Assembly: GCF_001194135.2 (NCBI RefSeq)
Contig: NC_068990.1
Coordinates: forward strand, 54,858,997-54,920,940
From: Octopus bimaculoides
Lineage: Eukaryota
Length of the DNA stretch: 61,944 nt
Direction of reading: 5' to 3'
In this document: piece after piece, positions 4,707 to 10,700 of the stretch
Position numbering within the stretch: the first letter of the stretch is position 1
How the letters are laid out: every line of letters starts with the position of its first letter
Notes under the pieces: generated by a model
Told to the model about the DNA's origin: nothing
The model's database searches: none
The model's input: the letters and a program-made list of their open reading frames with translations, nothing else
Translations under genes and position numbers: made by a program

Positions 4707-7700
4707 GTAAATTATTTTTACTTAATACACGTAGGTAGTGAGTTGTATTTTTTTAGACCCTTGTGGTCAAAGGTATTCTTGCCACGATCTTTTGTTTCTT
4801 TTCTTGTTTAATATGGCTAGAACTACATCATTGTCTTATATGCACTTCTTTAAAAGAAAATGTGATATGAGAAATATTTGGTTGCTATTTCTCATTATTT
4901 GAATGACTTCATAGAACCTTTCAGTTAGGCAGAAACAGTAAGAGAATATGCATATCAAAGGTATTTAGCATCTTTTCTAGGCTCCAGTCAAAATCTCAAC
5001 AATCAGCATAAATTTTTAGCATTATGTTTAGTTTTTACTTTTAGCTTTATTTTACATGCAGGCATGACTCTGTGGTAAGAAACTTACTTCCCAACCACAT
5101 GGTTTCAGATGCAGTCCCACTGCATGGCACCTTGGGTAAGTGTCTTCCGCTATAACCTCACTCTGGCCAAAGCCTTGTGAGTGGATTTCATAGACAGAAA
5201 TTGAAAGAAGTCCATCAAGTGTGCGTTGTGACTTTGTGTCCCCTGCTACTGTTTGACAACCAGTGTTGGTGTGTTTATGTCTCTAACTTAGTGGTTTAAT
5301 CAAAGAGACTGAAAGAATAAGTACCTGGCTTAAAAACAAAAGAAGAAAAAGGTATTGGGGTTGATTTGTTCGACTAAAAATTCTTCAAGGTGGTACCCTT
5401 GCATAACCATAGTCTAATGACTGAAACAAGTAAAAATTGAAGATCGCTTGCTCAAGGCTTTTAAGTATGTAGGAGGGAGGACAGTATCTTCAAACCAGAG
5501 ACTTAACCTGAATGCTTTCAACAGAGTGGACTCCATTAACCCTTTAGCATTTCAACCAGCCATATCAAACCTGAAAATTCTAGTTGTTCTATGTTCACAC
5601 CAGTCAGATCCAACCTCTTACACCTACCCTACAGTGTCATTATAAAAATAAACAATCATGTCATTGAAATCTTGAAGATAACAACATAATACGTGAACAG
5701 TTTAAAACAATGTGAATAAAATAGCATTACATTTAACTGAATAATCTGAATGCTAAGAATTTCTTGTAGCTTGGGTATTTGCTCTACAAAAAGTATATGG
5801 CCAGAAACTTGGATTTGGGACTGGGTAGTTTGAGAAGGAAGAAAGTCACAGTCAGTTAAGGTGCTGAGTGTTTTGCTCCTCTGCTTGCTTAACCAATTTT
5901 GTTGGGCATGTATTTATTGAGTTTAGTGGTGGCCAAATGTGCAGCAGGGTCTGAACCAAAAATTGAAATTGTTTGCATGATTTGTGAGTTTGAGCTGCTC
6001 ATTGCTAGTTATCACTACTTTGGAGCCATAACAATTAAAAAATGGGTGAGATATACTGCTTCCCTTGGGAATTCTATGTCTCCCAATTCTGCTCTTAGAT
6101 TTCTGCTTTGGGGCTTAGTTTCTGCTAATCTACTTTTCGAATACATTGCTGATCATCTTATAATACCTTGTGAAAGAGTGCTATTTTGAATCTCTTCCAA
6201 CAAAATGTGATTGGTAATCATGTCAAAAGCTTTCATTAAGTTTAATCCCATAGTAACTGACTGGTGATTGGTGGTTCTGGTTAAATCCAGCTGTAATGAA
6301 TATTGAGAGGAACAAAAGTGGTGAAGCTGTAGTGCTCAGACCCGAATCTATGCTGGCAGTTTTGTGGGAACTAGATGGGTATTGATTGAGGATAGAAAAC
6401 ACTATTTAAAAAACCTTGCAATTGAACTGAAAAGAGACATTTGTCTGTTTGATACTGAGTCAGTTTCAACTTTGCCATGTTTCTGAGAAAAAAGATGGCT
6501 AAACCATAGGAAAAAGTTTGTTCTCTCTTTTTATTTTATTTTTTTTTTTTTTTTTTTTTTTTTTTTTTTTTGTAATGATGGTTGTGTATTTTGAGGGATA
6601 ATTGGTTGATACTTCTAACATGTGGAGCTTCTATCTAGAGTCTTGCACTTTGTCTTCAAGTGTTTTGTGTTATAAACAATGGCAACAATCTAAAAATCAA
6701 CAAGTTGTTTACCAGATTGCAGTATTAAAATCTTCATGTGAGTGTAGAGATTTGATCTGTTAAAAGTAGCAACCAAATCCACTTCAACCCATAACCTGCT
6801 GGTTTAAAAAAAAAAATAAAAACACCTAGGTACTATATCTGTACAATGGAAAATGGGATAGTCATTGCTAGAATGTGCTTAATCAACTGGTTATATTAAT
6901 CTGGAGCTAAACTTTTGAGCAATTTCTATTTGCCATGCTACTAAATCCAGAATCTGGTATGTGTGTGTACATATGAGAGAGAGAGACTATATCTGATAAA
7001 ATTCATCCTATATTATCTATTAATGAGTGGATATTCCTCACCAGTTTCGAGGAACTCCAATCATATCAATGCTGCTTGTTAGAATAGATTTGGTTGCTTC
7101 AGTTTTTTTAATCATTGTTTTCAGACTGTTGTTATTTCATTTATTCACATTTGTTTTTTTTTATTTTAGGAGTTACCTTTGACCTATCTCAACTGAAGAA
7201 ATCTAAGGGATACACCATAAGTGATCAAAAAGAACATTCATTCCAACTGAACATTTGTGGTGCAGTGGCAAATAGCCAATGTTCAAAAGAATCCAGTAAG
7301 TTTGATTTTTTTATTTTATTTTATTTCATTTTATTTTATTTCATTTCTTTTGCCATATTTGGATTAATTTTCCTCCTCTTAACATACAATCAGTGAGGGT
7401 GCCTTTACATGTACCACAGAAAGTATTTCTACTACGTAAATGATGGTGTAAATAATGGTGCCTCTTCAATGCCAACATGTGTTTCTCTACTGTATCAATG
7501 AGGGTACCTCTACTGTAACAACTAGGGATATCTTTCCTGCTGTATCAACAAGGGATGTCTCTGCCATACCAATTAAAGTGTCTTATTAATAATGGGTCTT
7601 CTCACTCAAAGTTGCCTGGAACTAAACGCCTACAGCTGTAACTACACAATCTTCTATCTACTCTGCTATACTACTTCTCTAGACATGAGCCAACAAGGAA

Positions 7701-10700
7701 GCTTTTAGGTGGTCACGTGATCTACTAGAAATAGGTAGCAAAATCTCTCTCAAATCACAATTTATTGCCTTAAGCAAACGAGAATACACTGGATAATATG
7801 ATAAACAAAAAGGGGATGGCCATGGTAGAAATGTCTTTCATCTTGTAGTTTTGCACAAATAGGTCTTATCTGGAGTGGTGGGGGAGTTAACACCACCACT
7901 GGCTAAAACAACAACTTCCCTATGTATGTCCTCATTGTCTTGTTAAATTTTATATTCTCTTACATTCTTCTCCCTTTTTTTCTCCTTAATGAAGGCTCCT
8001 GCCAGACCAACACGTATGCCAATAGATCTTTTAATTGTGGAAATGCTAACAGCAACCTTCAATTCAAAGAAGGCGTCATTTTCCTGAACTACTCTGGTGG
8101 TGATAAATGTCATGGAGGCAAGTTTGAACGGAACACAATCATCAACTTTGTGTGCAACCCCTCAAAAGGAATAGGTGCCCCTGTGTATCTAGCTGAATCT
8201 AAAAATTGCACTTACTATTTTTCCTGGCATACCGATTTAGTTTGTGAAAAACAGGTAATTAATTTTTCTTTCATACTTTCACTTGTTTCAGTCATTTGAC
8301 TACAGCCATGCTGGAGCATCGCCTTTTAGTCAAAGAAATCAACCCCAGGACTTACTCTTTGTAAGCCTAGTACTTATTCTATTGGTCTCTTTTGCTGAAC
8401 TGTTAAGTTACAGGGGCATAGACACACCAACATCAGTTGTCAAGCGATGGTGGTGGAGACAAACACAGACGCGCACATAAATGCATACATATGTGTATAT
8501 ATATATACACACATACACACAACAGGCTTCTTTCTGTTTTTGTCTACCAAATCCACTCACAAGACTTTGGTCAGCCCATTGCTATAGTAGAAGACACTTG
8601 CTCAAGGTACCACGCAGTGGGACTGAACCCAGGACCATATAGTTGGGAAGCAAGCTTCTTACCACACAGCCATATATGCACCCTATCTTTTTTTTTTTTT
8701 TGCAATAATACTTAATAACCAGGTCTGTTAAAACACAATCAGCCAGATATTGTTTTGTAGGACCACAAGAAGAAAATTTGCACTGTTGTGGAAATGAGCT
8801 GCCATCTGGATACCAATGAGTTTAGAAAAACACAGAAAGGAAATATTTATGGACCATTGATTAGGGAGTTCACAAATCCAGTACTCAAGATATACCTTCA
8901 GTTTCATCCCATTATTATTGGACCGTCGTGATACATGCCAACTCACCCAGAGCAAAATATGGTTCGGCTTGGGTTTTTAGGGAGAGAATGCAACTCCTAG
9001 TGAGGCATCACTTTTTAGGATTTTAGTTGATCAACTACATCATCATTTAGCATCTCCTTTTTCCATGCTTACATGAGCCAGACGAAATTTGTTAAGGTAG
9101 ATTTCCTATGGCTAGATACTCTTCCTGTTGCTAACCCTCATCTGTTTCCAAGCAAAATAATATTTCCCTGTGGCCAGATATGTTTTTTACAGAAGATATG
9201 TTGTGCTTGAGAAGACTCGTCAAGCCAAGTGAAATCATAGCCATGGCCGATACCGGTACTACATAAATGATACCTGTGCCAGTGGTACTTAAAAGCACTT
9301 ACCCCAGGGGTATATTAAAAACACCCATTACACCCTTGGAGTGGTTGGTGTTTGGAAGGGCATCCAGCTGTAAAGACCATGGTAAACCAGACTGGAACTT
9401 GGTGCAGCTCTCCAACTTGCCAGTTTCAGTCAAACCATCTAACCTATGCCAGCTTGGAAAGCAGATGCTAAATGCTGATGATGACTGAAAATGAACATCA
9501 TCACCTGTATGATGGTGATGCTCATTTACAATCATAACATTACATCAAAATAAGAGGGCACACACACACACACACACACACACACACACACACACACACA
9601 CACACACACACACACACACACACATGTGTATATATATATATATACAATGGGCTGCTTCCAGTTTCCCTCTATCAGATTCTCTCATAAGGTCATAGTCAGC
9701 CAAAGGTAATAGTAGAAGACACTTGCCCATATAGTGTGACAGTGAGATTAAACCTGAGACCACATGGTTAGGATGCAAGTTTAACCAAATAGCCATGTCT
9801 GTACCTATAGTGTTTATTTCTTAACTTGGGTACTTATTTTATTAATCTCTTTGTCAAACCACAGTTTCGATCCACTAATTTCACCCATAATGCATTGGTT
9901 GGCCCAAGGTTATAGTAGCAGACATGGGCCCACAATGTGGTGCCACTGAACCCAAAACCATGTGATGGTGAAACAAACTTGTTACCCACAATGCTATGCC
10001 TTTGCCTACACTTACTTTTATTGTCATCATTTAACATCTGTTTCCATGGGTTGGACGGTTTGACAGTAAATGACAGACCAGAGAGCTTCACCAGGCTCTA
10101 ATTGTCTGTTCTGGTATGGTTTCTATGTCAACCACTTTACAGAGAATACTGGGTGCTTTCTACATGGCACCAGTGTTTTTTATGTGACACCTACATGGAT
10201 GCTTTATATGTGGCACCAGTATACTCTTTGTGTGGCACCAGCATGGTTGCTTTCTACATGACACCAGCATATGTACCTGCTATGTGATAGTGGCAGGGGT
10301 GCTTGCTAAGTGACACTGGCATGAGTGCCTTTTATATGGCACCAATTTATATATTTATTTATTTATATATTATTGTTATTATTATTTTTCGTTTTTAAAG
10401 TCCAGTCTTAATGTTCTTTCTCTCTTTTGTGTAGGTTCGTTGTACAGTGATAAAAGGTGACCAGATGTTTGATTTATCTCCACTGGTACAGATGTCCGGA
10501 CATCATGTTGCTGAAGGCTTGGCACCATCGGAAGATCCTGGTGCTTCATACTACATAAATATTTGCCGACCCTTAAATCCCATCTTTGGGTCTTTCTGTC
10601 CCCCTCTTGCTTCTGTTTGTGAGACCAATGTTGGTGAAAATGGTGTGGTAAGTATATTGATTTTGTTTGTTCTATGTCATCCTGATGAAATCAACCTATG

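Follow-up and report, generated by a model that had tools for sequence, protein, structure and literature searches.

What domain 11 of the receptor for mannose 6-phosphate and for insulin-like growth factor II (IGF-II) was before mammals used it to bind a hormone is a question raised by a stretch of DNA from Octopus bimaculoides. The stretch, here called the window (61,944 nucleotides; assembly GCF_001194135.2, contig NC_068990.1, positions 54,858,997 to 54,920,940 of the forward strand), carries the 3′ part of the gene for the cation-independent receptor for mannose 6-phosphate (CI-MPR, also IGF2R), a protein of tandem MRH repeats, and at the place of domain 11 (D11; the other repeats are denoted likewise) it encodes a repeat with a complete lectin signature. 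In textbooks IGF2R exemplifies how an old receptor gains a site for a new ligand, and the parental-conflict account of imprinting builds on it; views of the state that preceded the IGF-II site, and of the timing of the change, have until now been based on vertebrate sequences only. In the first domain 11 structure, reportedly that of Brown et al. in 2002, IGF-II is said to bind where other repeats bind sugar. By current accounts, sugar is bound in D3, D5, D9 and D15 and IGF2 in D11 (PMC11541866, PMC7481795), and the receptor of Aplysia is stated only to be without IGF2 affinity (PMC6779898). A full-text search of the literature, with subscription reviews outside its reach, found no paper that speaks of a lectin signature in D11 or D8 of invertebrates; an earlier published notice of the D11 signature may exist.

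Signature residues and predicted pocket of octopus domain 11

Three exons encode the repeat, and the second and third join in frame across GT-AG borders (7170-7295 and 7995-8254; VTFDLSQLKK…NICGAVANSQCSKESS|SCQTN…GGDKCHGGKFERNTIINFVC…PVYLAESKNCTYYFSWHTDLVCEKQ). A first-pass annotation of the window had set its observation on this repeat at 7170-8254. This interval covers two of the three exons, and the first nine residues (CRVTDEST-G) are encoded in exon 4571-4706. The annotation had also counted the repeat as the fifth from last, and four more MRH repeats, a transmembrane helix and a DDSDEDMIL tail are indeed found downstream; the sequence strings it reported are present, with DLSPL…YINICRPLNP in the next exon (10435-10647), and the codons of the five signature residues lie exactly where it had placed them. 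The exons and residues of the domain are as follows.

4571-4706, + strand: C-terminal strands of MRH domain 10 (CEHHFLWATREAC), then the D11 start CRVTDEST and the first base of a Gly codon; placed by splice sites and phase, and by tblastn with residues 1469-1519 of the Octopus sinensis protein
7170-7295, + strand: N-terminal exon of D11 (VTFDLSQLKK…NICGAVANSQCSKES), 97.7% identical to O. sinensis
7995-8254, + strand: C-terminal two thirds of D11 with all five signature residues (SCQTN…CTYYFSWHTDLVCEKQ); Pfam CIMR E = 1.6e-22
8003-8005, + strand: Gln codon CAG, Q54 in domain numbering; aligns with the essential Gln of D3, D5 and D9 and with F1567 of human D11
8108-8113, + strand: Cys-His of loop C (C89 and H90; His codon CAT at 8111-8113); the His aligns with that of GGDTCH in human D9
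8129-8131, + strand: Arg codon CGG, R96; aligns with the essential Arg of D3, D5 and D9 and with Y1606 of human D11
8195-8197, + strand: Glu codon GAA, E118; aligns with the essential Glu of D3, D5 and D9 and with D1630 of human D11
8207-8215, + strand: Cys-Thr-Tyr (C122 and Y124; Tyr codon TAC at 8213-8215); the Tyr aligns with the essential Tyr of D3, D5 and D9 and with L1636 of human D11

Residue equivalence was taken from HMMER alignments to the human and bovine domains, which bore out the earlier assignment of Q, R, E and Y to their counterparts in D3, D5 and D9 and of the His to that of D9. The residue numbers of human D11 were counted from the HMMER alignment, anchored on Y1542, F1567 and I1572. 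In the four signature columns human D11 has F1567, Y1606, D1630 (flanked by L1629 and K1631) and L1636; two of the equivalents named beforehand, F1567 and L1636, stand, and the third, L1629, is one residue off the column, which is that of D1630.

At the four conserved ligand-contact positions of the P-type lectins, octopus D11 has Gln, Arg, Glu and Tyr (Q-R-E-Y) by both the HMMER and the hidden Markov model (HMM) column alignments. Read by HMM columns, the four residues stand together in only five of the 15 repeats of the O. sinensis receptor (D3, D5, D8, D9 and D11), and the other ten have at most two of them. Because so few repeats are complete, and because the D11 set is kept across four phyla, the signature is not there by chance.

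The cysteines of loop C and loop D (GDKC…NCTY) are both present in octopus D11, as in D3 and D9, D5 being without them. In P-type lectin sites a disulfide joins these loops, and loop C has a phosphate-side residue, Ser in D3 and His in D9. By homology, a Cys89-Cys122 disulfide probably ties loop C to loop D in the octopus domain. C89, C122 and His90 are invariant among the signature-retaining D11 orthologues of the aligned set, the His following the loop C Cys in 12 of 12 sequences. A count of the five residues among 23 invariant columns was dropped as circular, the taxa having been picked for signature retention. At the column that we take to be that of Tyr45 in the cation-dependent receptor (CD-MPR), octopus D11 has His, not Tyr.

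With mammalian D9 and D3, the high-affinity sites for mannose 6-phosphate (M6P), octopus D11 shares the MRH fold, the four residues in the same alignment columns, the loop C Cys and the loop D Cys-x-Tyr, and it has the D9-like His after the loop C Cys; it differs in standing at position 11, in grouping with D11 orthologues and in a longer loop C. Mammalian D11 is the orthologous repeat at the same place among the 15, alike in fold, in the ligand-facing end of the barrel and in the C-terminal motif CT.(Y/F)FSWHT.L.CE, but the polar octopus pocket (Q54/R96/E118/Y124) is replaced in man by F1567/Y1606/D1630/L1636. The phosphodiester-preferring D5 has a complete Q-R-E-Y and the highest single-domain score with octopus D11, whereas it lacks the cysteine pair and is another repeat by position and tree. 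The fold is also that of CD-MPR (MPR46), OS-9, GNPTG and glucosidase II beta, which unlike the octopus receptor are single-domain proteins or of other architecture, and among which phosphate recognition varies. CD-MPR and other MRH lectins carry the same four mannose-binding residues.

An AlphaFold2 model of O. sinensis D11, made from a 40-sequence alignment, is confident (predicted local distance difference test score, pLDDT, 93.9; predicted template modelling score, pTM, 0.87). It has the Gln in β3, the Arg at the start of β7, the Glu at the end of β8, the Tyr in β9 and the His in the β6-β7 loop. Foldseek matched the model to human D1-5 (top), human D11, D9-10, D5 and M6P-bound D1-3 at root mean square deviations (rmsd) of 1.8-3.2 Å, in a comparison of the global fold. 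Against human D11 the template modelling (TM) score normalised to the target was ~0.9 with an rmsd of ~2 Å, and CD-MPR and other MRH lectins were matched at E = 1e-8 to 1e-4. In the predicted fold the signature residues are at topologically equivalent positions.

Judged by residues and predicted fold, octopus D11 is likely to be a working P-type lectin carbohydrate site, which would add to those of D3, D5, D9 and probably D8 in a receptor sorted between Golgi and endosomes by its tail. Several points weigh against this. In the D11 orthologues loop C exceeds that of D3 and D9 by one residue (Cys to Arg +7 vs +6). A ninth, unpaired-looking Cys stands in octopus D11 (SFNCGNAN, 8039-8041), in the window and in O. 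sinensis alike; it has no evident partner, and the position is taken by Ala, Ser, Thr, Gly or Ile in the remaining D11 orthologues. The modelled O. sinensis domain differs from the window domain at a few non-pocket residues, and a neighbouring domain could cover the D11 pocket in the intact receptor. Q-R-E-Y is, moreover, found in MRH lectins for non-phosphorylated mannose (OS-9, glucosidase II beta), so the signature alone is no proof of M6P specificity; we infer phosphate specificity of D11 from two features only, its D9-like His and its putative loop disulfide.

The domain could then be a working lectin of another specificity, binding the phosphodiester Man-P-GlcNAc as D5 does, or non-phosphorylated high-mannose glycans as OS-9-type lectins do, and not the M6P monoester. 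Q-R-E-Y contacts the mannose ring, not phosphate, and is the mannose-recognition set of MRH lectins generally; the top single-domain scores are those of human and bovine D5 (82 and 74.5 bits, vs 53-72 for D3 and D9), the top Foldseek match is the D1-5 structure, and the longer loop C also counts in favour of this reading. We think this unlikely, though a serious candidate, since both loop cysteines are kept (GDKC…NCTY, against GDKYNS…SNSTY in O. sinensis D5) and the D9-type His comes right after the loop C Cys throughout the aligned signature-retaining D11 sequences.

Distribution of the signature and identity of the repeat

A full-library HMMER search was made with the single exon 7997-8254, and full-length receptors were segmented by an MRH profile and their signature columns read. 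A single-exon query biases the matches to D11-like repeats that keep the signature, and the survey therefore rests on full-length receptors, retrieved regardless of the state of D11. Thirty of these were assigned to taxa via cluster look-ups, without identified cephalochordate (amphioxus), lamprey or hagfish sequences among them. A word-indexed protein search, with the domain and with a ten-species D11 profile, matched single-exon fragments from unannotated contigs only.

All five residues (Q-H-R-E-Y) were found in D11 of molluscs (Octopus, the scallop Ylistrum and the clam Mya), arthropods (the spiders Nephila and Stegodyphus, the scorpion Centruroides, Limulus, the sea spider Nymphon and the centipede Strigamia), echinoderms (the starfish Asterias, a sea urchin, XP_011660649, and the crinoid Antedon) and the hemichordate Glandiceps, an acorn worm. 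Three gastropods displayed a degraded signature (Q-H-R-S-Y, Q-R-R-S-Y and Q-N-R-R-Y). It was degraded or gone in the unionid mussel Sinanodonta (L-P-R-D-Y), the nemertean Tubulanus (L-S-R-S-S), a tick, the annelid Dimorphilus and a crayfish, and gone in the tunicate Ciona (L-S-H-D-H) and in all the sampled vertebrates: whale shark (I-S-H-S-H), sturgeon (I-L-H-S-H), a teleost and a caecilian (V-P-Y-F-F). With bearers in both protostome superclades as well as in Ambulacraria, the signature is by parsimony ancestral for bilaterians, whose common ancestor most likely had a lectin-type domain 11. Ciona, shark and sturgeon have in common a His at both the Arg and the Tyr column, which suggests one loss of the D11 pocket before tunicates and vertebrates parted. 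In the lineages that lost the site, several of the five residues, including the His, are gone jointly and loop C is one residue longer; the joint loss matches the release of one functional constraint.

This pattern bears on whether the signature might be a structural relic, the site binding nothing, either occluded in the folded 15-domain receptor or with loops incompatible with a ligand. In one conformation of the bovine receptor, neighbouring domains can block the D9 site (PMC7481795), and the extra Cys of the octopus domain would fit a relic as well. Against this, the five residues are kept in molluscs, arthropods, echinoderms and a hemichordate despite a mean column identity of ~50% (in a mixed ten-sequence D11 alignment), and several are lost together wherever any is lost. 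Such retention across phyla, with joint loss, indicates selection on a function, and because the conservation spans four phyla we regard a relic as improbable.

The identity of the repeat needs more care. The first-pass annotation had called it domain 11 and had named grouping with vertebrate D9 as the outcome that would speak against this. Set alone against the mammalian domains, the repeat scores less with D11 (~50 bits; HMMER) than with D5, D3 and D9 (values above), and since a shift of numbering would give this pattern too, the numbering was tested in four ways. A multi-domain query was collinear with D11-D15 of the bovine receptor (residues 1517-1907, 1951-2135 and 2192-2289), and its best single collinear stretch in this register reached 185 bits, vs 139 for the D5-6 or D9-10 registers (bovine). 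In eight of nine full-length receptors of named species the best match of the window repeat was D11, with 90-139 bits in the six other invertebrates, where no other repeat exceeded 96; in Ciona, D5 (83 bits) and D11 (81 bits) were effectively tied. In 15 × 15 matrices of domain scores all the best scores were diagonal for octopus vs Glandiceps (15/15) and for Glandiceps vs the caecilian Geotrypetes (15/15), and 12 of 15 for octopus vs caecilian. A neighbour-joining tree of 136 repeats contained a clade holding only the ten D11 sequences. In quartets (300 replicates) the window repeat paired with the D11 of the same species over D9 or D5 in 79-93% of replicates and over D3 or D8 in 66-94%, and grouped with D9 in 1-16% of bootstraps.

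Not all of this speaks for D11 with equal force. The bootstrap of the whole D11 clade is weak (25/200), and collinearity, score matrices and quartets were for this reason relied on instead. For the window repeat caecilian D11 is scarcely ahead of D5 (92 vs 88 bits), and with the O. sinensis repeat as query the two are tied (94 vs 94 bits). Neither best reciprocal similarity nor tree grouping, however, made the repeat an orthologue of D9, and the per-domain tree, the diagonal matrices and the quartets favour D11. The O. sinensis CI-MPR has exactly 15 repeat ends and 15 HMM-defined MRH repeats, of which the window repeat is the 11th. The repeat has 104-139 bits with the D11 of other phyla but 80 with O. 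sinensis D5 and 77 with its D9, and being so much nearer to the former than to its own paralogues, it is not the product of recent gene conversion. That it is really D9 or D5 under a numbering shifted by repeat loss or gain, or a recently converted lectin repeat, as the single-domain scores against mammals and the marginal lead of D5 in Ciona would allow, is very hard to believe in view of the 15 repeats, the two fully diagonal matrices, the collinearity with bovine residues 1517-2289 (D11 to D15), the rarity of the D9 grouping and the closeness to D11 of other phyla. In position as in phylogeny, the window repeat and vertebrate D11 are orthologues, and the numbering of the repeat is sound.

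The receptor gene and its other repeats

The DNA is AT-rich across the window, with microsatellites, assembly gaps and transposon fragments. The gene model on the + strand consists of 19 exons, with GT-AG borders throughout and consistent phases, which give an open frame of 872 residues and a stop codon. Its product aligns without gaps to residues 1469-2340 of the O. sinensis CI-MPR (90.5% identity), and the exon borders were checked by tblastn of that protein against the window. The window holds the last strands of D10, domains 11-15, the transmembrane helix and a tail of 57 residues; no earlier exon of the receptor gene was found by tblastn with the O. sinensis protein in bases 1-4570. The repeats 11-15 of the window, and the 15 of O. 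sinensis, are collinear with those of the vertebrate receptor, and the single transmembrane helix and the acidic-cluster dileucine motif at the C-terminus are those of a CI-MPR. The gene is thus a plain orthologue of a well-known receptor, for which annotation already exists in O. sinensis and O. vulgaris. The exons downstream of domain 11 are the following.

10435-18900, + strand: domain 12, exons 10435-10647, 13442-13588 and 18727-18900, the last of which also begins domain 13; tblastn and splice sites
20343-22989, + strand: domain 13, exons 20343-20550, 22112-22188 and 22835-22989, the last of which also begins domain 14; tblastn and splice sites
27265-31646, + strand: domain 14, exons 27265-27407, 30399-30528 and 31578-31646; tblastn and splice sites
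32645-40869, + strand: domain 15, exons 32645-32728, 36095-36291, 39387-39493 and 40784-40869; tblastn
43241-43375, + strand: transmembrane helix exon (IIVIAVSVTFSIIVIAVLL); tblastn
44384-44453, + strand: cytoplasmic tail exon (QIMKENIKNIFTRNRTVKARYIN); tblastn
47389-47490, + strand: last coding exon, with the acidic-cluster/dileucine-type C-terminus YHDDSDEDMIL (47389-47487) and the stop codon; tblastn

A candidate for the opening exon of domain 15, the fragment 32323-32544 ('RCKIRDNT'), was rejected, its splice phase being unfit. Runs of N (assembly gaps) are located at ~3900, 14067-14335, 16964-17160, 34230-34750, 45110-45215 and 59120-59290, none of them within coding exons, and as the protein aligns gaplessly to that of O. 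sinensis, no exon seems to be hidden in them. The cytoplasmic tail of the mammalian receptor has ~160 residues; that of the octopus is much shorter, with 57, yet ends in the acidic-cluster/dileucine-type motif DDSDEDMIL. C-termini like …HDDSDE[DE][LM]L.. are found in receptors of several phyla, and that of the caecilian ends …FHDDSDEDMLNV.

Introns and flanks contain transposon remnants at 34-732 (−), 16019-16531 (+), 23877-24269 (−) and 59374-59772 (+). Judged by eye, the open reading frames of the remnants are like a non-long terminal repeat (non-LTR) reverse transcriptase (FVPGKSTTDAIF; ERRLRWYGHVARMDE) and like the C-terminus of a mariner transposase (HQDNAQPHTA). The final ~360 bases (61583-61944) contain an open reading frame whose product abounds in Arg, Ala, Pro and Gly, a composition foreign to the rest of the window; a CpG-rich promoter, or the next gene's first exon, may lie here.

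Among the other repeats, domain 12 has an incomplete signature (E-R-A-Y). The columns of domain 15 read Q-I-E-F in octopus, and Q-V-E-Y in the caecilian and most of the sampled invertebrates; Gln and Glu are kept across bilaterians without the Arg, and the octopus also has Phe for Tyr. Mammalian D15 is reported to be an atypical fourth sugar site, which the presence of Gln and Glu without Arg fits. Beyond the window, domain 8 of the O. sinensis CI-MPR (P0009, residues 1051-1194) has a complete Q-H-R-E-Y (GGCQ…GDLCHKG…HRSTRINF…FESETKFCEY). The same set stands in D8 of acorn worm, starfish, nemertean, centipede, unionid mussel, Mya and Elysia; Ciona and the vertebrates have lost it. That these D8 repeats are orthologues is well backed by the bootstrap of their clade (164/200). 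For the bovine receptor, the D8 peptide 1113-1125 was protected on IGF2 binding and reported to be near the IGF2 site (PMC11541866).

Receptor-like proteins of 12-17 repeats (P0007, P0012, P0018, P0023 and P0038) were also encountered, with Q-R-E-Y in most repeats or nearly all of them (for instance P0007, 15/17; P0012, 11/15). Should these proteins come from protists or from animals that branched off early, nearly all repeats of the ancestral receptor may have been lectin-competent, their loss following later step by step.

Proposed function and probable path to the IGF-II site

The working of octopus D11 may be depicted as follows. The domain is by its predicted fold a canonical MRH β-barrel with its ancestral carbohydrate pocket retained, in which Gln54 (β3), Arg96 (β7), Glu118 (β8) and Tyr124 (β9) would hold the mannose hydroxyls, the Cys89-Cys122 link would join loop C to loop D, and His90 would occupy the place of the phosphate-side His of domain 9. 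As an additional binding site for the phosphomannosyl glycans of lysosomal hydrolases, D11 would raise the avidity that domains 3, 5, 9 and probably 8 provide, and through its acidic dileucine tail the receptor would be sorted between Golgi and endosomes. The structure of the gene, the identity of the domain, its aligned residues, their distribution and a confident fold prediction are shown here; the sugar binding and the trafficking role we infer. The pocket residues were later lost in tunicates and vertebrates and in several protostome lineages, and it was on this same face of the pocket, by then empty, that mammals much later built their hydrophobic site for IGF-II.

With a polar pocket, and with no fibronectin type II (FnII) insert in domain 13, octopus D11 is not expected to bind an IGF-type ligand. 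The hydrophobic patch of human D11 on the CD and FG loops is made up of F1567, I1572, L1629 and L1636; the octopus has Gln at the column of F1567 and Tyr at that of L1636. The FnII insert in mammalian domain 13 raises the affinity for IGF-II, and octopus domain 13 (20343-22989) is encoded without it. Among the sampled proteins the FnII motif was found in the caecilian (within D13), in P0140 and in P0051, there at another position, and in no others; an apparent insert in the Ciona savignyi model resembles intron read-through.

Changes of the CD loop that start in monotremes are given as the source of IGF-II binding in PMC6684648, which cites Williams et al. 2012. Since the lectin residues are already gone in Ciona and shark, and IGF-II binding is monotreme/therian, the change was a loss followed much later by a gain and not a direct switch, and domain 11 is without either function through most of vertebrate history. 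The first-pass annotation had suggested that the IGF-II site arose by repurposing an ancestral sugar-binding pocket. This idea is supported, lectin-type D11 being ancestral by its distribution and the mammalian IGF-II site descending from an old sugar-binding site, with one refinement: as the loss came long before the gain, the repurposing would have passed through a long period in which neither function was present.

A wider reading takes in domain 8. The receptor of the bilaterian ancestor would have had five complete sugar pockets (D3, D5, D8, D9 and D11), all of them kept in living cephalopods, some bivalves, echinoderms, hemichordates and a centipede. D8 and D11, given up by tunicates and vertebrates, lie at or next to the later IGF-II site, and their loss would have freed surface for hormone capture in mammals, invertebrate D11 and D8 being working M6P sites. 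We put this forward tentatively, as somewhat short of an even chance; if true, the accepted count of three to four sugar sites per receptor changes.

Since all the repeats are homologous to the lectin domain, a lectin-type D11 will not surprise specialists, and the value of the finding is in dated, testable steps. Its interest is confined to the state of the domain and its distribution, the gene itself being ordinary. The order of events has three steps: a lectin-type D11 in the bilaterian ancestor, its loss in the tunicate and vertebrate lineage, and a much later gain of IGF-II binding in mammals. The D11 and D8 of invertebrates would offer natural lectin scaffolds to set beside the M6P probes based on D9. 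For the receptor family the prediction is that invertebrate receptors would have five phosphomannosyl sites, not three or four, which bears on the sorting of lysosomal enzymes outside the vertebrates.

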